A stretch of 64,000 nucleotides of DNA from Auanema rhodensis. Lineage: Eukaryota; Animalia; Nematoda. A program made the translations under genes and the position numbers. Numbering within the stretch: the first letter of the stretch is position 1; each line of letters starts with the position of its first letter. The notes under the pieces were generated by a model. The model was not told the origin of the DNA and did not search any database. It worked only from the letters and a program-made list of their open reading frames with translations. The stretch lies in assembly GCA_964057225.1 (NCBI GenBank), contig OZ059894.1:13826001-13890000 (forward strand), given 5' to 3'. Of this stretch, positions 13,601 through 27,807 are shown in pieces.

Positions 13601-16600
13601 TGTTCACAAAAAAGTTCAGGCTGAGCACACGATCTGACCGGTGATTCTCCTTTTTTCTCATCGATCATAGATTTTATACAATGAAAAACATACAGAACTT
13701 GGGTATTGAAATCTCCAGAATCTGCATATCCTACTGAGACTTGGCTGGAATCTCTCAATTTTCCGGAAAAAGGGTTTATGTCAAGCCTATACGCAAGAAT
13801 GTTCACAAAAAAGTTCAGGCTGAGCACACGATCTGACCGGTGATTCTCCCTTTTTCTCATCGATCATAGATTTTATTCAATGAAAAATATACAGAACTTG
13901 GGTATTGGAACCTCCAAAATCTGAATATCCTACTAAGACTTGGCTGGAATCTCTCAATTTTCCGGAAAAAGGGTTTATGTCAAGCCTATACGCAAGAATG
14001 TTCACAAAAAAGTTCAGGCTGAGCACACGATATGACCGATGATTCTCCCTTTTTCTCATCGATCATAGATTTTATACAATGAAAAACATACAGAACTTGG
14101 GTATTGAAATCTCCAGAATCTGAATATCCTACTAAGACTTGGCTGGAATCTCTCAATTTTCCGGAAAAAGGGTTTATGTCAAGCCTATACGCAAGAATGT
14201 TCACAAAAAAGTTTAGGCTGAGCACACGATCTGACCGGTGATTCTCCCTTTTTCTCATCGATCATAGATTTTATTCAATAAAAAATATACAGAACTTGGG
14301 TATTGAAACCTCCAGAATCTGATAATCCTACTAAGACTTGGCTGGAATCTCTCAATTTTCCGGAAAAAGGGTTTATGTCAAGCCTATACGCAAGAATGTT
14401 CACAAAAAAGTTCAGGCTGAGCACACGATCTGACCGATGATTCTCCCTTTTTCTCATCGATCATAGATTTTATTCAATAAAAAATATACAGAACTTGGGT
14501 ATTGAAACCTCCAGAATCTAAATATCCTACTAAGACTTGGCTGGAATCTCTCAATTTTCCGGAAAAAGGGTTTATGTCAAGCCTATACGCAAGAATGTTC
14601 ACAAAAAAGTTCAGGCTGAGCACACGATCTGAGCGGTAATTCTCCCTTTTTCTCATCGATCATAGATTTTATTCAATAAAAAATATACAGAACTTGGGTA
14701 ATGAAATCTCCAGAATCTGCATATCCTACTGAGACTTGACTGGAATTTCTCAATTTTCCGGAAAAAGGGTTTATGTCAAGCCTATACGCAAGAATGTTCA
14801 CAAAAAAGTTCAGGCTGAGCACACGATCTGACCGGTGATTCTCCCTTTTTCTCATCGATTATAGATTTTATTCAATGAAAAACATATAGAACTTGGGTAT
14901 TGAAATCTCCAGAATCTGAATATCCTACTAAGACTTGGCTGGAATCTCTCCATTTTCCGGAAAAAGGGTTTATGCCAAGCCTATACGCAAGAATGTTCAC
15001 AAAAAAGTTCAGGCTGAGCAGACGATCTGACCGGTGATTCTCACCTTTTTCTCATCGATCATAGATTTTATTCAATGAAAAACATATAGAACTTGGGTAT
15101 TGAAATCTCCAGAATCTGAATATCCTACTAAGACTTGGCTGGAATCTCTCCATTTTCCGGAAAAAGGGTTTATGTCAAGCCTATACGCAAGAATGTTCAC
15201 AAAAAAGTTCAGGCTGAGCACACGATCTGACCGGTGATTCTCCCTTTTTCTCATCGATCATAGATTTTATTCAATGAAAAACATATAGAACTTGGGTATT
15301 GAAATCTCCAGAATCTGAATATCCTACTAAGACTTGACTGGAATCTCTCAATTTTCCGGAAAAAGGGTTTATGTCAAGCCTATACGCAAGAATGTTCACA
15401 AAAAAGTTCAGGCTGAGCAGACGATCTGACCGGTGATTCTCACCTTTTCTCATCGATCATAGATTTTATTCAATGAAAAACATATAGAACTTGGGTATTG
15501 AAATCTCCAGAATCTGAATATCCTACTAAGACTTGGCTGGAATCTCTTAATTTTCCGGAAAAAGGGTTTATGCCAAGCCTATGCGCAAGAATGTTCACAA
15601 AAAAGTTCAGGCTGAGCAGACGATCTGACCGGTGATTCTCCCTTTTTCTCATCGATCATAGATTTTATTCAATGAAAAATATACAGAACTTGGGTATTGA
15701 CACCTCCAGAATCTGAATATCTTATTGAGACTTGGCTGGAATCTTTCAATTTTCCGGAAAAAGGGTTTATGCCTAGCCTATGCGCAAGAATGTTCACAAA
15801 AAAGTTCAGGCTGAGCAGACGATCTGACCGGTGATTCTCCCTTTTTCTCATCGATCATAGATTTTATTCAATGAAAAATATACAGAACTTGGGTATTGAA
15901 ACCTCCAGAATCTGAATATCTTACTGAGACTTGGCTGGAATCTCTCAATTTTCCGGAAAAAGGGTTTATGAAAAGCGTATACGCAAGAATGTTCACAAAA
16001 AAGTTCAGGCTGAGCAGACGATCTGACCGGTGATTCTCACCTTTTCTCATCGATCATAGATTTTATTCAATGAAAAATATACAGAACTTGGGTATTGAAA
16101 CCTCCAGAATCTGAATATCTTACTGAGACTTGGCTGGAATCTCTCAATTTTCAGAAAAAAGGGTTTATGAAAAGCCTAAACGCAAGAATTTTCACAAAAA
16201 AGTTCAGGCTGAGCAGACGATCTGACCGGTGATTCTCACCTTTTCTCATCGATCATAGATTTTATTCAATAAAAAATATACAGAACTTGGGTATTGAAAC
16301 CTCCAGAATCTGAATATCTTACTGAAACTTGGCTGGAATCTCTCAATTTTGCGGAAACAGGGTTTATGAAAAGCCTAAACGCAAGAATTTTCACAAAAAA
16401 GTTCAGGCTGAGCAGACGATCTGACCGGTGATTCTCACCTTTTCTCATCGATCATAGATTTTATTCAATGAAAAATATACAGAACTTGGGTATTGAAACC
16501 TCCAGAATCTGAATATCTTACTGAGACTTGGCTGGAATCTCTCAATTTTCCGGAAAAAGGGTTTATGTCAAGCTTATACGCAAGAATGTTCACAAAAAAG

Positions 16601-19600
16601 TTCAGGCTGAGCAGACGATCTGACCGGTGATTCTCACCTTTTCTCATCGATCATAGATTTTATTCAATGAAAAATATACAGAACTTGGGTATTGAAACCT
16701 CCAGAATCTGAATATCTTACTGAGACTTGGCTGGAATCTCTCAATTTTCCGGAAAAAGGGTTTATGAAAAGCGTATACGCAAGAATGTTCACAAAAATTT
16801 CAGGCTGAGCAGACGATCTGACCGGTGATTCTCACCTTTTCTCATCGATCATAGATTTTATTCAATGAAAAACATATAGAACTTGGGTATTGAAATCTCC
16901 AGAATCTGAATATCCTACTAAGACTTGACTGGAATCTCTAAATTTTCCGGAAAAAGGGTTTATTTCAAGCCTATACGCAAGAATGTTCACAAAAAAGTTC
17001 AGGCTGAGCACACGATCTGACCGGTAATTCTCCCTTTTTCTCATCGATCATAGATTTTATTCAATAAAAAATATACAGAACTTGGGTATTGAAACCTCCA
17101 GAATCTGAATATCTTACTGAAACTTGGCTGGAATCTCTCAATTTTGCGGAAAAAGGGTTTATGAAAAGCCTATACGCAAGAATGTTCACAAAAAATTTCA
17201 GGCTGAGCAGACGATCTGACCGGTGATTCTCACCTTTTCTCATCGATCATAGATTTTATTCAATAAAAAATATACAGAACTTGGGTATTGAAACCTCCAG
17301 AATCTGAATATCTTACTGAAACTTGGCTGGAATCTCTTAATTTTCCGGAAAAAGGGTTTATGCCAAGCCTATACGCAAGAATTTTCACAAAAAAGTTCTG
17401 GCTGAGCACACCATCTGACCGGTGATTCTCACCTTTTCTCATCGATCATAGATTTTATTCAATAAAAAATATACAGAACTTGGGTATTGAAACCTCCAAG
17501 ATCTGAATATCTTACTGAGACTTGGCTGGAATCTCTCAATTTTCCGGAAAAAGGGTTTATGTCAAGCCTATACGCAAGAATGTTCACAAAAAAGTTCAGG
17601 CTGAGCAGACGATCTGACCGGTGATTCTCACCTTTTCTCATCGATCATAGATTTTATTCAATAAAAAATATACAGAACTTGGGTATTGAAACCTCCAAGA
17701 TCTGAATATATTACTGAGACTTGGCTGGAATCTCTCAATTTTCCGGAAAAAGGGTTTATGTCAAGCTTATACGCAAGAATGTTCACAAAAAAGTTCAGGC
17801 TGAGCAGACGATCTGACCGGTGATTCTCACCTTTTCTCATCGATCATAGATTTTATTCAATGAAAAACATATAGAACTTGGGTATTGAAATCTCCAGAAT
17901 CTGAATATCCTACTAAGACTTGACTGGAATCTCTCAATTTTCCGGAAAAAGGGTTTATTTCAAGCCTATACGCAAGAATGTTCACAAAAAAGTTCAGGCT
18001 GAGCACACGATCTGACCGGTAATTCTCCCTTTTTCTCATCGATCCTAGATTTTAATCAATGAAAAATATACAGAACTTGGGTATTGAAACCTCCAGAATC
18101 TGAATATCTTACTGAGACTTGGCTGGAATCTCTTAATTTTCCGGAAAAAGGGTTTATGCCAAGCCTATACGCAAGAATGTTCACAAAAAAGTTCAGGCTG
18201 AGCAGACGATCTGACCGGTAATTCTCCCTTTTTCTCATCGATCCTAGATTTTAATCAATGAAAAATATACAGAACTTGGGTATTGAAACCTCCAGAATCT
18301 GAATATCTTACTGAGACTTGGCTGGAATCTCTTAATTTTCCGGAAAAAGGGTTTATGCCAAGCCTATACGCAAGAATGTTCACAAAAAAGTTCAGGCTGA
18401 GCACACGATCTGACCGGTGATTCTCCCTTTTTCTCATCGATCATAGATTTTATTCAATGAAAAATATACAGAACTTGGGTATTGAAACCTCCAGAATCTG
18501 AATATCTTATTGAGACTTGGCTGGAATCTCTCAATTTTCCGGAAAAAGGGTTTATGGCAAGCCTATACGCAAGAATGTTCACAAAAAAGTTCAGGCTGAG
18601 CACATGATCTGACCGGTGATTCTCCCTTTTTCTCATCGATCATAGATTTTATTCAATGAAAAATATACAGAACTTGGGTATTGACACCTCCAGAATCTGA
18701 ATATCTTACTGAGACTTGGCTGGAATCTTTCAATTTTCCGGAAAAAGGGTTTATGCCAAGCCTATACGCAAGAATGTTCACAAAAAAGTTCAGGCTGAGC
18801 ACACGATCTGACCGGTGATTCTCCCTTTTTGTCATCGATCATAGATTTTATTCAATGAAAAATATACAGAACTTGGGTATTGAAACCTCCAGAATCTGAA
18901 TATCTTATTGAGACTTGGCTGGAATCTTTCAATTTTCCGGAAAAAGGGTTTATGAAAAGCCTATACGCAAGAATGTTCACAAAAAAGTTCAGGCTGAGCA
19001 CACGATCTGACCGGTGATTCTCACCTTTTCTCATCGATCATAGATTTTATTCAATGAAAAATATACAGAACTTGGGTATTGACACCTCCAGAATCTGAAT
19101 ATCTTATTGAGACTTGGCTGGAATCTTTCAATTTTCCGGAAAAAGGGTTTATGCCTAGCCTATGCGCAAGAATGTTCACAAAAAAGTTCAGGCTGAGCAG
19201 ACGATCTGACCGGTGATTCTCCCTTTTTCTCATCGATCATAGATTTTATTCAATGAAAAATATACAGAACTTGGGTATTGACACCTCCAGAATCTGAATA
19301 TCTTACTGAGACTTGGCTGGAATCTTTCAATTTTCCGGAAAAAAGGTTTATGCCTAGCCTATGCGCAAGAATGTTCACAAAAAAGTTCAGGCTGAGCACA
19401 CGATCTGACCGGTGATTCTCACCTTTTCTCATCGATCATAGATTTTATTCAATGAAAAATATACAGAACTTGGGTATTGACACCTCCAGAATCTGAATAT
19501 CTTATTGAGACTTGGCTGGAATCATTCAATTTTCCGGAAAAAGGGTTTATGCCTAGCCTATGCGCAAGAATGTTCACAAAAAAGTTCAGGCTGAGCAGAC

Positions 19601-22600
19601 GATCTGACCGGTGATTCTCACCTTTTCTCATCGATCATAGATTTTATTCAATGAAAAATATACAGAACTTGGGTATTGACACCTCCAGAATCTGAATATC
19701 TTATTGAGACTTGGCTGGAATCTTTCAATTTTCCGGAAAAAGGGTTTATGTCAAGCCTATACGCAAGAATGTTCACAAAAAAGTTCAGGCTGAGCACACG
19801 ATCTGACCGGTGATTCTCCCTTTTTGTCATCGATCATAGATTTTATTCAATGAAAAATATACAGAACTTGGGTATTGACACCTCCAGAATCTGAATATCT
19901 TACTGAGACTTGGCTGGAATCTTTCAATTTTCCGGAAAAAAGGTTTATGCCTAGCCTATGCGCAAGAATGTTCACAAAAAAGTTCAGGCTGAGCACACGA
20001 TCTGACCGGTGATTCTCACCTTTTCTCATCGATCATAGATTTTATTCAATGAAAAATATACAGAACTTGGGTATTGACACCTCCAGAATCTGAATATCTT
20101 ATTGAGACTTGGCTGGAATCTTTCAATTTTCCGGAAAAAGGGTTTATGCCTAGCCTATACGCAAGAATGTTCACAAAAAAGTTCAGGCTGAGCACACGAT
20201 CTGACCGGTGATTCTCCCTTTTTGTCATCGATCATAGATTTTATTCAATGAAAAATATACAGAACTTGGGTATTGAAACCTCCAGAATCTGAATATCTTA
20301 CTGAGACTTGGCTGGAATCTCTCAATTTTCCAGAAAAAGGGTTTATGCCAAGCCTATACGCAAGAATGTTCACAAAAAAGTTCAGGCTGAGCACACGATC
20401 TGACCGGTGATTCTCACCTTTTCTCATCGATCATAGATTTTATTCAATGAAAAATATACAGAACTTGGGTATTGAAACCTCCAGAATCTGAATATCTTAC
20501 TGAGACTTGGCTGGAATCTCTCAATTTTCCAGAAAAAGGGTTTATGCCAAGCCTATACGCAAGAATGTTCACAAAAAAGTTCAGGCTGAGCACACGATCT
20601 GACCGGTGATTCTCACCTTTTCTCATCGATCATAGATTTTATTCAATGAAAAATATACAGAACTTGGGTATTGACACCTCCAGAATCTGAATATCTTATT
20701 GAGACTTGGCTGGAATCTTTCAATTTTCCGGAAAAAGGGTTTATGTCAAGCCTATACGCAAGAATGTTCACAAAAAAGTTCAGGCTGAGCACACGATCTG
20801 ACCGGTGATTCTCCCTTTTTCTCATCGATCATAGATTTTATTCAATGAAAAATATACAGAACTTGGGTATTGACACCTCCAGAATCTGAATATCTTATTG
20901 AGACTTGGCTGGAATCTCTCAATTTTCCGGAAAAAGGGTTTATGTCAAGCCTATACGCAAGAATGTTCACAAAAAAGTTCAGGCTGAGCACACGATCTGA
21001 CCGGTGATTCTCCCTTTTTGTCATCGATCATAGATTTTATTCAATGAAAAATATACAGAACTTGGGTATTGACACCTCCAGAATCTGAATATCTTATTGA
21101 GACTTGGCTGGAATCTCTCAATTTTCCGGAAAAAGGGTTTATGTCACGCCTATACGCAAGAATGTTCACAAAAAAGTTCAGGCTGAGCACACGATCTGAC
21201 CGGTGATTCTCCCTTTTTGTCATCGATCATAGATTTTATTCAATGAAAAATATACAGAACTTGGGTATTGAAACCTCCAGAATCTGAATATCTTACTGAG
21301 ACTTGGCTGGAATCTTTCAATTTTCCTGAAAAAGGGTTTATGAAAAGCCTATACGCAAGAATGTTCACAAAAAAGTTCAGGCTGAGCACACGATCTGACC
21401 GGTGATTCTCACCTTTTCTCATCGATCATAGATTTTATTCTATGAAAAATATACAGAACTTGGGTATTGACACCTCTAGAATCTGAATATCTTATTGAGA
21501 CTTGGCTGGAATCTTTCAATTTTCCGGAAAAAGGGTTTATGTCAAGCCTATACGCAAGAATGTTCACAAAAAAGTTCAGGCTGAGCACACGATCTGACCG
21601 GTGATTCTCACCTTTTCTCATCGATCATAGATTTTATTCAATGAAAAATATACAGAACTTGGGTATTGACACCTCCAGAATCTGAATATCTTATTGAGAC
21701 TTGGCTGGAATCTTTCAATTTTCCGGAAAAAGGGTTTATGTCAAGCCTATACGCAAGAATGTTCACAAAAAAGTTCAGGCTGAGCACACGATCTGACCGG
21801 TGATTCTCACCTTTTCTCATCGATCATAGATTTTATTCAATGAAAAATATACAGAACTTGGGTATTGACACCTCCAGAATCTGAATATCTTATTGAGACT
21901 TGGCTGGAATCTTTCAATTTTCCGGAAAAAGGGTTTATGCCTAGCCTATGCGCAAGAATGTTCACAAAAAAGTTCAGGCTGAGCAGACGATCTGACCGGT
22001 GATTCTCCCTTTTTCTCATCGATCATAGATTTCATTCAATGAAAAATATACAGAACTTGGGTATTGACACCTCCAGAATCTGAATATCTTATTGAGACTT
22101 GGCTGGAATCTTTCAATTTTCCGGAAAAAGGGTTTATGTCAAGCCTATACGCAAGAATGTTCACAAAAAAGTTCAGGCTGAGCACACGATCTGACCGGTG
22201 ATTCTCACCTTTTCTCATCGATCATAGATTTTATTCAATGAAAAATATACAGAACTTGGGTATTGAAACCTCGAGAATCTGAATATCTTATTGAGACTTG
22301 GCTGGAATCTTTCAATTTTCCGGAAAAAGGGTTTATGTCAAGCCTATACGCAAGAATGTTCACAAAAAAGTTCAGGCTGAGCACACGATCTGACCGGTGA
22401 TTCTCACCTTTTCTCATCGATCATAGATTTTATTCAATGAAAAATATACAGAACTTGGGTATTGAAACCTCCAGAATCTGAATATCTTACTGAGACTTGG
22501 CTGGAATCTTTCAATTTTCCTGAAAAAGGGTTTATGAAAAGCCTATACGCAAGAATGTTCACAAAAAAGTTCAGGCTGAGCACACGATCTGACCGGTGAT

Positions 22601-24081
22601 TCTCACCTTTTCTCATCGATCATAGATTTTATTCAATGAAAAATATACAGAACTTGGGTATTGACACCTCCAGAATCTGAATATCTTACTGAGACTTGGC
22701 TGGAATCTTTCAATTTTCCAGAAAAAGGGTTTATGTCAAGCCTATACGCAAGAATGTTCACAAAAAAGTTCAGGCTGAGCACACGATCTGACCGGTGATT
22801 CTCCCTTTTTCTCATCGATCATAGATTTTATTCAATGAAAAATATACAGAACTTGGGTATTGACACCTCCAGAATCTGAATATCTTACTGAGACTTGGCT
22901 GGAATCTTTCAATTTTCCAGAAAAAGGGTTTATGTCAAGCCTATACGCAAGAATGTTCACAAAAAAGTTCAGGCTGAGCACACGATCTGACCGGTGATTC
23001 TCACCTTTTCTCATCGATCATAGATTTTATTCAATGAAAAATATACAGAACTTGGGTATTGACACCTCCAGAATCTGAATATCTTACTGAGACTTGGCTG
23101 GAATCTTTCAATTTTCCAGAAAAAGGGTTTATGTCAAGCCTATACGCAAGAATGTTCACAAAAAAGTTCAGGCTGAGCAGACGATCTGACCGGTGATTCT
23201 CCCTTTTTCTCATCGATCATAGATTTCATTCAATGAAAAATATACAGAACTTGGGTATTGACACCTCCAGAATCTGAATATCTTATTGAGACTTGGCTGG
23301 AATCTTTCAATTTTCCGGAAAAAGGGTTTATGTCAAGCCTATACGCAAGAATGTTCACAAAAAAGTTCAGGCTGAGCACACGATCTGACCGGTGATTCTC
23401 ACCTTTTCTCATCGATCATAGATTTTATTCAATGAAAAATATACAGAACTTGGGTATTGAAACCTCCAGAATCTGAATATCTTATTGAGACTTGGCTGGA
23501 ATCTTTCAATTTTCCGGAAAAAGGGTTTATGTCAAGCCTATACGCAAGAATGTTCACAAAAAAGTTCAGGCTGAGCACACGATCTGACCGGTGATTCTCA
23601 CCTTTTCTCATCGATCATAGATTTTATTCAATGAAAAATATACAGAACTTGGGTATTGAAACCTCCAGAATCTGAATATCTTACTGAGACTTGGCTGGAA
23701 TCTTTCAATTTTCCTGAAAAAGGGTTTATGAAAAGCCTATACGCAAGAATGTTCACAAAAAAGTTCAGGCTGAGCACACGATCTGACCGGTGATTCTCAC
23801 CTTTTCTCATCGATCATAGATTTTATTCAATGAAAAATATACAGAACTTGGGTATTGACACCTCCAGAATCTGAATATCTTACTGAGACTTGGCTGGAAT
23901 CTTTCAATTTTCCAGAAAAAGGGTTTATGTCAAGCCTATACGCAAGAATGTTCACAAAAAAGTTCAGGCTGAGCACACGATCTGACCGGTGATTCTCCCT
24001 TTTTCTCATCGATCATAGATTTTATTCAATGAAAAATATACAGAACTTGGGTATTGAAACCTCCAGAATCTGAATATCCTA
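10657..24081. repeat. 199-bp tandem satellite, ~67.5 copies
   Basis: The 199-bp period is visible directly and in the spacing of the ORF track. Monomers differ by a few substitutions and rare 1-bp indels. Each contains the palindrome TTTTCCGGAAAA, mutated in some copies. Confidence 0.99.
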
Positions 24082-24365: not shown

Positions 24366-27300
24366 TTATGCCCAACTTCCACCTCCGCCTTCATCCTTTT
24401 TGCCGGTGGATGGATATAGTCCACCTCCTCCTTGACCACCATTATCATCATATACTGGTCCAGCGCCGGTTGGGCTACCTCCTTGGTATCCTTGACCACG
24501 GTTGAAGCCACCGCCACCACCTCCAAACGCGGAACCTCCACCTCCACGACCTAAGATTTGAAGATCCGCATTAAGTAAAAAGTCATTCCTTTTTTTCTAC
24601 CTCTTCCAGAAAGGAATCTACTAACAAGGGAACCAATTGCTGCTCCACCTCCAGTTCGTAAAAGATTGCTGAACATGTTACTTCCACCAGAACGAGGAGG
24701 GGCTCCTCCACCACCATCTAAATAGTTTTGTAAAAATGAGACAAAAATTGAAAAAAAAACCATTTGGTGGTACAGAAGCATTCTGATTGCCTCCTTTTGA
24801 TCTGCAACAGCAGCAATAGCAGCATAAGCAACAACAGAGCAATGGAACAATAACGAAGATAAGAGCAAGCCAAATCCAGGATGGAATAGCTGGCATTTTG
24901 AAATTTGATCCTATAATTATTCCGTTAAACTTTTCATTCTAACTGAACATAAGAACCACCTTTACCACCTTGTCCACCTGAGAAACCACTTCCACCGTTG
25001 TTATTGTTGAATGGAGTCGGTTGCTGTCCTCTTCCGCCACCAGCAGAACCACTACTTGGTTGAGATGGACTTCCAGCTTTCGAGCTTGCTTTTTCCCTAA
25101 AAAAAATTACAAATTAAACGTGAAAAGTCTTCTGAAACACGCGGTCGATGCTATGCAAGATCTTTCGTATAATAATGTGTATCTGCGCCGCAACGATATC
25201 TTTGGTATAATGATGTTTATCTGTGCCGCAACCATATCCAAAATTTTATGACCGACTTAGGTGTGGCCGAATGGTCTAGGGGTATGATTCTCGCTTTGGG
25301 TGCGAGAGGTCCCGGGTTCAAATCCCGGTTCGGCCCAAATTTTTTAATTTCTGGGCTTCTGAATCTTTATTGCCTGAGGCAACGAAGACGTCGGCGTCGT
25401 CCGAAGTCTTCTGACCGACCTAGGTGTGGCCGAATGGTCTAGGGGTATGATTCTCGCTTTGGGTGCGAGAGGTCCCGGGTTCAAATCCCGGTTCGGCCCA
25501 AATTTTTTAATTTCTGGGCTTCTGAATCTTTATTGCCTGAGGCAACGAAGACGTCGGCGTCGTCCGAAGTCTTCTGACCGACCTAGGTGTGGCCGAATGG
25601 TCTAGGGGTATGATTCTCGCTTTGGGTGCGAGAGGTCCCGGGTTCAAATCCCGGTTCGGCCCAAATTTTTTAATTTCTGGGTTTCCGAATCTTTATTGCC
25701 TCAAGCAACAAAGACGTCGGCGTCGTCCGAAGTCTTCTAACCGACTTAGGTGTGGCCGAATGGTCTAGGGGTATGATTCTCGCTTTGGGTGCGAGAGGTC
25801 CCGGGTTCAAATCCCGGTTCGGCCCAAATTTTTTAATGTCTGGGCTTCTGAATCTTTATTGCCTGAGGCAACGAAGACGTCGGCGTCGTCCGAAGTCTTC
25901 TGACCGACCTAGGTGTGGCCGAATGGTCTAGGGGTATGATTCTCGCTTTGGGTGCGAGAGGTCCCGGGTTCAAATCCCGGTTCGGCCCAAATTTTTTAAT
26001 TTCTGGGTTTCTGAATCTTTATTGCCTGAGGCAACGAAGACGTCGGCGTCGTCCGAAGTCTTCTGACCGACCTAGGTGTGGCCGAATGGTCTAGGGGTAT
26101 GATTCTCGCTTTGGGTGCGAGAGGTCCCGGGTTCAAATCCCGGTTCGGCCCAAATTTTTTAATTTCTGGGCTTCCGAATCTTTATTGCCTCAGGCAACAA
26201 AGACGTCGGCGTCGTCCGAAGTCTTCTGACCGACTTAAGTGTGGCCGAATGGTCTAGGGGTATGATTCTCGCTTTGGGTGCGAGAGGTCCCGGGTTCAAA
26301 TCCCGGTTCGGCCCAAATTTTTTAATTTCTGGGCTTCCGAATCTTTATTGCCTCAAGCAACAAAGACGTCGGCGTCGTCCGAAGTCTTCTGACCGACTTA
26401 GGTGTGGCCGAATGGTCTAGGGGTATGATTCTCGCTTTGGGTGCGAGAGGTCCCGGGTTCAAATCCCGGTTCGGCCCAAATTTTTTAATGTCTGGGCTTC
26501 TGAATCTTTATTGCCTGAGGCAACGAAGACGTCGGCGTCGTCCGAAGTCTTCTGACCGACCTAGGTGTGGCCGAATGGTCTAGGGGTATGATTCTCGCTT
26601 TGGGTGCGAGAGGTCCCGGGTTCAAATCCCGGTTCGGCCCAAATTTTTTAATTTCTGGGCTTCTGAATCTTTATTGCCTGAGGCAACGAAGACGTCGGCG
26701 TCGTCCGAAGTCTTCTGACCGACCTAGGTGTGGCCGAATGGTCTAGGGGTATGATTCTCGCTTTGGGTGCGAGAGGTCCCGGGTTCAAATCCCGGTTCGG
26801 CCCAAATTTTTTAATGTCTGGGCTTCTGAATCTTTATTGCCTGAGGCAACGAAGACGTCGGCGTCGTCCGAAGTCTTCTGACCGACCTAGGTGTGGCCGA
26901 ATGGTCTAGGGGTATGATTCTCGCTTTGGGTGCAAGAAGATATCAATGAATTGTTGTGCTGAGGCAACGATCATAGCAAAATTCTGTGGACAAAATTTAA
27001 AACTAACCACGTGGCTTGGAGAACATTTGTCAGTGCTTGTTGATAATTTGATTGTTGGAAGAGAGATTTCTAAAGGTTGAACTTGAAAGTATAATATATT
27101 AGATTAACAAGCATACTTGCTTCATGAAGATATCAGTGAATTCTTGTGCGTATACTGGCACCTTATCGTCACGAGCAACCCAAAACTTCATATCATCAGT
27201 GGATACCTGAATTAATACTTAATTTCTAAACGAAATATTAAAATTCAACTAGAAAAAGAAAATACAAACCACAATAACAATGGCTTTCTGGCACTGAGGA

Positions 27301-27807
27301 TCTAGAGTCCATCTTTGAAGCATATCATTAGCCATTTGGCTTACAGCCTGAAAAATTTTATCGTTAATTTGTGTACAACAAGTTTAAATATGATATAGTA
27401 TTTTCTTTTAAACCTTACATCAGTTGATCCTCCTTTGACATGCCGAGCTATTGCCATGGCAGCAGTAACTCCTTTTTTGTCACAGAAAGAATGAGCCATA
27501 TTCTGAAGTTAGTGGTATTCACTTAAAGGATTGAATGGAAAATTTTAGTACCTGACGAGTACGAGACTCAAGTTGCTTGAGGTCATGATCTAATCTGTAT
27601 CTAGCAGATTCACTTAAAACACCGTCAGGATCACAAATATTCGCTGTTGTTCTCATTTTGCATGCCTGAAGAATGATTCTCAAATAGATTCAGGAATACT
27701 CAAAATATTACTTTAAATTGCCCAGCAGTTGGGTTAGGATAATTGCTCGCATCCCATTCGGTGGCTATCGTTCCTGTTATAAACAGGAAAAGTAGGAGCC
27801 AATTCAT
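24366..27807 (-). CDS. TPM-domain (MOLO-1-like) single-pass membrane protein with Gly-rich cytoplasmic tail
   Basis: Signal peptide MNWLLLFLFITGTIA; WDASNYPNP...CKMRTTANICDPDGVLS...FCDKKG...WTLDPQCQK; TM segment WIWLALIFVIVPLL followed by a Cys cluster CCCLCCYCCCC; Gly-rich tail ending GGGGSWA*. The frame is kept across the 25097-27007 intron (TG|G, Trp). Confidence 0.85.
25265..25336 (+). tRNA. tRNA-Pro (TGG), copy 1
   Basis: GGCCGAA/TTCGGCC acceptor stem, A box TGGTCTAGGGG, anticodon arm CTCGC-TTTGGGT-GCGAG, B box GGTTCAAATCC, followed by TTTTTT. Confidence 0.97.
25428..25499 (+). tRNA. tRNA-Pro (TGG), copy 2
   Basis: Identical to copy 1. Confidence 0.97.
25591..25662 (+). tRNA. tRNA-Pro (TGG), copy 3
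   Basis: Identical to copy 1. Confidence 0.97.
25754..25825 (+). tRNA. tRNA-Pro (TGG), copy 4
   Basis: Identical to copy 1. Confidence 0.97.
25917..25988 (+). tRNA. tRNA-Pro (TGG), copy 5
   Basis: Identical to copy 1. Confidence 0.97.
26080..26151 (+). tRNA. tRNA-Pro (TGG), copy 6
   Basis: Identical to copy 1. Confidence 0.97.
26243..26314 (+). tRNA. tRNA-Pro (TGG), copy 7
   Basis: Identical to copy 1. Confidence 0.97.
26406..26477 (+). tRNA. tRNA-Pro (TGG), copy 8
   Basis: Identical to copy 1. Confidence 0.97.
26569..26640 (+). tRNA. tRNA-Pro (TGG), copy 9
   Basis: Identical to copy 1. Confidence 0.97.
26732..26803 (+). tRNA. tRNA-Pro (TGG), copy 10
   Basis: Identical to copy 1. Confidence 0.97.
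26895..26933 (+). pseudogene. 3'-truncated tRNA-Pro (5' half only)
   Basis: Matches the first 39 nt of the tRNA, then breaks just after the anticodon loop. No B box. Confidence 0.9.

Follow-up and report, generated by a model that had tools for sequence, protein, structure and literature searches.

Tandem tRNA-containing units with a satellite-like organization make up the tRNA arrays of Entamoeba and the tRNA clusters of vertebrates, as they do the array described here. The units of those systems usually hold several different tRNA genes, are much longer, and are not intronic, unlike those of the present array.

The clustered tRNA-Pro genes of Arabidopsis (24, 6, and 9 copies; Hummel et al., 2020, PMC7544208) share with it the isotype, a similar copy number, and the retention of canonical Pol III elements. 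These clusters, located near pericentromeres, are silenced epigenetically, whereas the array reported here lies antisense within an animal gene whose other introns are short. It is common for rhabditid nematodes to carry tRNA genes in introns. Of the 609 tRNA genes of C. elegans, 44% are intronic, and their expression can be influenced by the host promoter (Sagi et al., 2016, PMC4999229). Like these single Caenorhabditis genes, the present array sits within an intron of a gene that encodes a protein; it differs in that the tRNA gene has been multiplied tenfold, with the intron expanding from roughly 0.2 kb to about 1.9 kb.

The germline assembly of Auanema rhodense (180.9 Mb, seven chromosome scaffolds), probably the same genome as that searched here, has 19,554 annotated tRNA loci including only 215 pseudogenes, and tandem blocks of several tRNA loci were noted in it (10.64898/2026.08.27.747507). 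Head-to-tail blocks of one tRNA gene with few pseudogenes are common to that description and to this locus. The published arrays were given in outline and lie mainly within germline-restricted repeat blocks, unlike the present array of 1.7 kb, which is intronic, in a gene of a conserved family, and in non-satellite DNA. It is a small case among hundreds of tRNA arrays in the genome, a phenomenon already published in outline. As a whole, the locus is likely explained by the growth in place of one intronic tRNA-Pro(UGG) gene as part of a genome-wide amplification tendency.

Anatomy of the tRNA-Pro(TGG) array

The window, i.e., the whole stretch of 64,000 nucleotides that was analyzed, corresponds to C1:13,826,001-13,890,000 in a searched genome of 180,911,798 bases and 112 contigs, much bigger than that of C. 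elegans. ARAGORN identified ten tRNA-Pro(TGG) genes on the plus strand of the window at a constant step of 163 bp, each scoring 58 bits against Rfam RF00005 (cut-off 29 bits), and TRF delimited the array at 25249-26937 (period 163, 10.4 copies, 97% matches). The features of the array are as follows:

25249-26937, plus strand: tandem array of 10.4 units with a 163-bp period, each unit comprising a 16-nt leader, a 72-nt tRNA, and 75 nt of spacer (TRF, unit comparison)
25265-25336, plus strand: tRNA-Pro(TGG) copy 1 (ARAGORN, RF00005)
25340-25345, plus strand: T6 run of the Pol III terminator type, 3 nt past the 3' end of copy 1 and recurring in every unit (sequence, consensus unit)
25428-25499, plus strand: tRNA-Pro(TGG) copy 2 (ARAGORN, RF00005)
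25591-25662, plus strand: tRNA-Pro(TGG) copy 3, with the most divergent spacer at 7 differences from the consensus (ARAGORN, RF00005, unit comparison)
25754-25825, plus strand: tRNA-Pro(TGG) copy 4 (ARAGORN, RF00005)
25917-25988, plus strand: tRNA-Pro(TGG) copy 5 (ARAGORN, RF00005)
26080-26151, plus strand: tRNA-Pro(TGG) copy 6 (ARAGORN, RF00005)
26243-26314, plus strand: tRNA-Pro(TGG) copy 7 (ARAGORN, RF00005)
26406-26477, plus strand: tRNA-Pro(TGG) copy 8 (ARAGORN, RF00005)
26569-26640, plus strand: tRNA-Pro(TGG) copy 9 (ARAGORN, RF00005)
26732-26803, plus strand: tRNA-Pro(TGG) copy 10 (ARAGORN, RF00005)
26895-26937, plus strand: truncated 11th tRNA copy, its first ~39-43 nt, interrupted within the anticodon stem, where unrelated sequence takes over (sequence, unit comparison)

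All ten copies were head to tail on a single strand, and direct comparison of the units showed one 72-nt body sequence common to 10/10. Exactly nine positions varied among the ten units, all of them within the 91-nt spacer and none in the body. The first-pass annotation had described ten identical tRNA-Pro(TGG) genes in 163-bp tandem units with about nine variable spacer positions in 91 bp, and ARAGORN, RF00005, TRF, and the unit comparison bore this out; the truncated 11th copy was absent from it.

The A box (body positions 8-18, TGGTCTAGGGG) matched the textbook consensus at 9/11 positions and the B box of the T-arm (GGTTCAAATCC) at 10/11, both regions looking like those of a normal eukaryotic tRNA-Pro, and every body was followed immediately on its 3' side by AAA and then T6. 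Each 163-bp unit therefore reads as a complete Pol III type-2 gene with 5' leader, A and B boxes, canonical cloverleaf, and T6 terminator, as had been proposed, and for this reason the ten copies are probably competent for transcription. These elements make Pol III activity of the array plausible. Clustered tRNA genes in Arabidopsis are silent although their promoter elements are canonical (PMC7544208), so the intact sequence of the Auanema array is no proof of activity.

The MOLO1-family host gene

The array lies antisense in intron 6 of a gene on the minus strand, for which a manual model of ten exons was built:

24366-27807, minus strand: MOLO1-family host gene, manual 10-exon model (frame, splice sites, Pfam PF17175 matches)
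27807-27712, 27665-27552, 27502-27419, 27347-27270, and 27206-27117, minus strand: host exons 1-5 (manual model)
27069-27008, 25096-24966, 24910-24761, 24717-24601, and 24550-24366, minus strand: host exons 6-10 (manual model)
25097-27007, minus strand: intron 6 of the host gene, 1,911 nt, GT...AG (exon model, splice sites)
25160-25238, plus strand: 38-bp direct duplication (2.1 copies) within intron 6, close to the left end of the array (TRF)

All introns of the model were GT...AG, the phases closed, a stop codon stood at the end, and the frame was intact across intron 6. The tRNA array occupied 88% of the 1,911 nt of this intron, compared with lengths of 43-71 nt for the other host introns. 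The intron boundaries originally given proved correct to the base, the donor being GT and the acceptor AG, and the claim that the host frame is preserved across the array held in that the ten-exon model closes. This in-frame model predicts splicing of the host transcript across the array. In local alignments, the 38-bp duplication was not significantly similar to either the spacer or host exon 5.

Host exons were searched singly against Pfam rather than as one spliced protein. Exon 2 alone matched MOLO1 (PF17175) with 33.1 bits (cut-off 27; profile positions 16-52), which upheld the initial description of a TPM/MOLO-1-like host, and exon 4 gave a weak match of 14.6 bits at the end of the profile (positions 92-116). 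A six-frame scan of the genome scored the locus at 38.7 bits (27264-27668, profile positions 14-118) and yielded about five MOLO1-family loci, including one on C8 that fits PF17175 better than the host gene; because of this better match, the host is classed on its sequence as a MOLO1-family member rather than as the named molo-1 orthologue. In the translations, inspected by eye, the N-terminus encoded by exon 1 is hydrophobic, and exon 8 encodes a stretch that is both hydrophobic and rich in cysteine. This stretch is likely membrane-spanning and lies downstream of the array, so that a full-length host product would need splicing across it.

A 199-bp satellite (67 copies, 96% identity) was also present in the window at 10657-24078, ending ~300 bp from the 3' end of the host gene. 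Relatives of 73-83% identity were found as small blocks on C1 (at 14.61 and 15.88 Mb), C4, C5, and C6. This satellite constitutes a dispersed family of short blocks, unlike the megabase satellite blocks.

tRNA arrays elsewhere in the genome

An exact 24-nt anticodon-arm pattern retrieved about 352 Pro(TGG) genes genome-wide, of which the window array represents ~3%. Most are in far larger arrays on the chromosome that carries the window, including large arrays of the same body at C1 ~7.42-7.57 Mb with periods of 253, ~375, ~497, and ~617 bp, and the body also occurs in a four-copy array on C7 and at single loci. Replacing the first anticodon base of the pattern by A, C, or G retrieved about 399 further genes, those for other Pro isoacceptors. 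The top-scoring tRNA matches in the genome were Arg(TCG) genes with a period of ~377 bp over C4:18.56-18.94 Mb. Amplification of tRNA genes is thus general across isotypes and neither proline- nor anticodon-specific, which settled the question, raised from the window sequence, of whether isotypes other than this one are also arrayed, with both Pro(CGG) and Arg(TCG) arrays found.

The amplified set includes an isoacceptor for a usually rare codon, and amplification of this breadth argues against an explanation by proline demand or collagen synthesis. The suggestion that the array could boost proline supply for cuticle collagens consequently found no support, in view of the ~399 genes for other Pro isoacceptors, the CGG arrays, and the Arg(TCG) arrays that span hundreds of kb. 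Nor was there support for the supposition that the window array is unusual, among ~352 Pro(TGG) genes that are mostly in bigger arrays.

The tRNA-Pro(CGG) arrays extend over C1:8,551,832-8,627,581 with a period of ~245 bp and >100 copies; their blocks occur in both orientations, with several kb between one block and the next. ARAGORN also called three tRNA-Gln(TTG) genes inside the Arg(TCG) arrays at C4 ~18.67 and 18.94 Mb (L024:3023-3097, L024:4157-4231, and L025:4112-4186). These are presumably Arg bodies in which the anticodon has mutated from TCG to TTG and, if expressed, could misread codons.

Body and spacer variation

Among the ten units of the window array, variable sites numbered 0/72 in the body versus 9/91 in the spacer, and the probability that all nine land in the spacer under uniform mutation is p = (91/163)^9 = 0.0053. 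The four units of the C7 array likewise had 0 variable sites in the body versus 14 in the spacer, and diversity (pi) in a C1 array of 24 units of 253 bp was 0.015 in the body versus 0.068 in the spacer. The tRNA bodies are therefore constrained relative to the spacers in the window array and in two others. This agreed with the earlier view of an amplified and still constrained array, against which equal diversity of body and spacer in other genomic copies would have counted; body diversity was the lower in both the C7 and the C1 arrays. At least one change was present in 19/93 tRNA bodies sampled from the big arrays, so constraint on any single copy is loose. The uniformity of the bodies could result from purifying selection, from gene conversion between the hundreds of bodies with this sequence, or from both, and conversion alone could yield identical bodies without selection on the window array.

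Comparison of the spacers showed that units 1, 2, and 9 are identical, as are units 4, 8, and 10, while units 3, 6, and 7 form a diverged group 4-8 differences away over 91 spacer positions. The two spacer lineages are interleaved along the array. The first-pass annotation had called the array recently amplified; true tandem amplification stands, and its recency is to be qualified by these two lineages.

The same amplification might have left a silent and neutral by-product, held in repressed chromatin or never transcribed, with bodies uniform through youth and through conversion with the hundreds of identical bodies elsewhere. The silence of the Arabidopsis tRNA-Pro clusters of 24, 6, and 9 copies despite canonical elements (PMC7544208) is consistent with this, as are the changed bodies in the larger arrays, by which individual copies appear dispensable, and a genomic complement of ~352 copies to which ten more would hardly be limiting. 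The lower diversity of bodies than of spacers in three independent arrays argues against it, and so does the location within an apparently intact gene in non-satellite DNA; with spacer lineages 4-8 differences apart and zero body changes, the array is moreover not very young. We regard a silent array as possible, although its probability is well short of even.

The array may have a selected local role, which we consider unlikely. It might raise the supply of tRNA-Pro for proline-rich proteins. Alternatively, as a TFIIIC/Pol III cluster, it might insulate the MOLO1-like host or throttle it by head-on transcription, and the host promoter might gate the array, as demonstrated for sup-7 in C. elegans. 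Expression of intronic tRNA genes in C. elegans does depend on the host promoter (PMC4999229), and the position of the putative exon 8 membrane segment past the array means that Pol II would cross ten antisense Pol III units to give the full protein. Such a role is at odds with the arrays of CGG and other Pro isoacceptors and of Arg(TCG), with the small share of Pro(TGG) genes in the window, and with the existence of about five MOLO1-family loci in the genome.

Origin and growth of the array

A search of the 181-Mb genome matched the 91-nt spacer only to the ten units of the window array, and the right flank of the array was single-copy. The confinement of the spacer to this locus indicates that the array grew in place. 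Flanks of the other Pro(TGG) loci were unrelated to it, sharing only the tRNA, (T/C)GT just upstream, and AAA plus a T run downstream, and the unrelated spacers of the other Pro(TGG) arrays imply that amplification recurred independently at several loci. Local amplification of the window array accordingly combines an observed uniqueness of the spacer with a presumed mechanism.

Under the preferred explanation, the starting point would have been a lone tRNA-Pro(UGG) gene, antisense in intron 6 of the MOLO1-family gene. Unequal crossing-over or replication slippage would then have amplified it in place to ten full units and one truncated, with the bodies kept identical and the spacers drifting. 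The array would be a minor result of a tendency, seen across the genome, for tRNA genes of many isotypes to be amplified, and neither a proline-specific nor a host-gene-specific device. The interleaved unit types fit repeated unequal exchange in multi-unit registers rather than a single burst.

At the right end of the array, the intron sequence adjoining the truncated tRNA resembles a host exon:

26938-26959, minus strand: 22-nt intron stretch matching host exon 5 (27128-27149) at 20/22 positions (local alignment)

The score of this match was reached by 0/500 shuffles, and the stretch reads as a relic of a local duplication. The end of the array inside a tRNA, together with this exon-5-like relic, implies at least one extra local rearrangement at the right end, for which simple unequal crossing-over alone does not account. 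Homology of the spacer and the left flank to host exon 5 was also considered and was rejected as not significant in local alignments; the 22-nt right-flank match stands out, as do an exact 12-mer that the spacer shares with the right intron flank and an exact 11-mer shared with the left.

A four-copy tRNA-Pro(TGG) array with the same period of 163 bp is located on the minus strand at C7:6,889,276-6,890,012, followed by a fifth, heavily decayed copy. A common origin with the window array was rejected on account of their unrelated spacers, and the equal period is read as a coincidence.

An array fragment pasted in from elsewhere, or a tRNA-derived mobile element, would explain why both ends fall at an arbitrary phase of the unit, the left end 16 nt upstream of a tRNA and the right end in the middle of one. 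It is improbable, however, as the spacer occurs at no other locus in 181 Mb, no dispersed copies of it were found there, and neither an A-rich tail nor an obvious target-site duplication was seen in the array sequence; the exact 11- and 12-mers common to the spacer and the intron flanks hint, as weak evidence, at a local origin. A tRNA-derived SINE or retrocopy was rejected on the same grounds: the spacer is confined to the array, and neither a tail nor a target-site duplication was seen. Over-expansion or a chimeric join in the assembly, which the abrupt end within a tRNA copy and the error-prone assembly of tandem repeats might suggest, is very improbable for an array of 1.7 kb that is far shorter than PacBio HiFi reads (if the assembly is the HiFi assembly of the preprint), in which the non-periodic pattern of nine variants anchors each unit and which is set between unique flanks, in a coherent intron, and among in-frame exons.

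Possible retention of the locus in the soma

About 61% of the germline genome of A. rhodense is lost from the soma, mostly as satellite blocks at chromosome ends and centers (10.64898/2026.08.27.747507). Most of the window is non-tandem DNA that carries fragments of ordinary genes, among them a HAD hydrolase and a short-chain dehydrogenase, and this content is taken to favor retention of the locus in the soma.

A telomere-like motif, TAGGC-N15-GCCTA, was absent from the window and had recurrent matches on C1 on either side of it, at 10,852,762 (plus strand) and 17,531,190 (minus strand). The motif begins CAGTGGATA, continues with the telomere-like GCCTAAGCC, and was present on six of the large scaffolds. 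Its role as an elimination break signal was rejected, since no satellite lay within 5 kb of either C1 site, the sites have a common non-palindromic flank, and one of them is ~300 bp from a Tc3-type transposase domain. The motif is probably a Tc1/mariner-type terminal repeat that resembles the telomere-seeded break-site pattern.

Elsewhere on C1, a 350-bp satellite followed by a 160-bp repeat occupies 5,558,001-5,562,490 and stops abruptly at ~5,562,490, with unique sequence beyond. An imperfect GGCTT...AAGCC palindrome was observed at L029:4712-4733, where L029 starts at C1:5,558,001.

Significance

It is doubtful, though conceivable, that the array is retained in the soma and forms an active cluster of Pol III genes whose head-on transcription or TFIIIC binding is coupled to the MOLO1-like host, such that the host promoter gates the ten tRNA genes at once or the array throttles production of the full-length membrane-anchored protein. 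If true, the locus would serve as a natural model of how Pol II and Pol III interfere with each other inside a single intron.

On its own, the window array matters little. It is nevertheless small, fully resolved, and apparently locally born, with flanks, variants, and a truncated end that can be read base by base, and this makes it a convenient specimen for how the hundreds of tRNA arrays in the genome start and grow. It is likewise useful for asking if transcription occurs from arrays in gene-rich DNA, and what effect ten antisense Pol III units have on a host gene spliced across them. For such arrays in general, the genome-wide counts argue against explanations based on codon demand.
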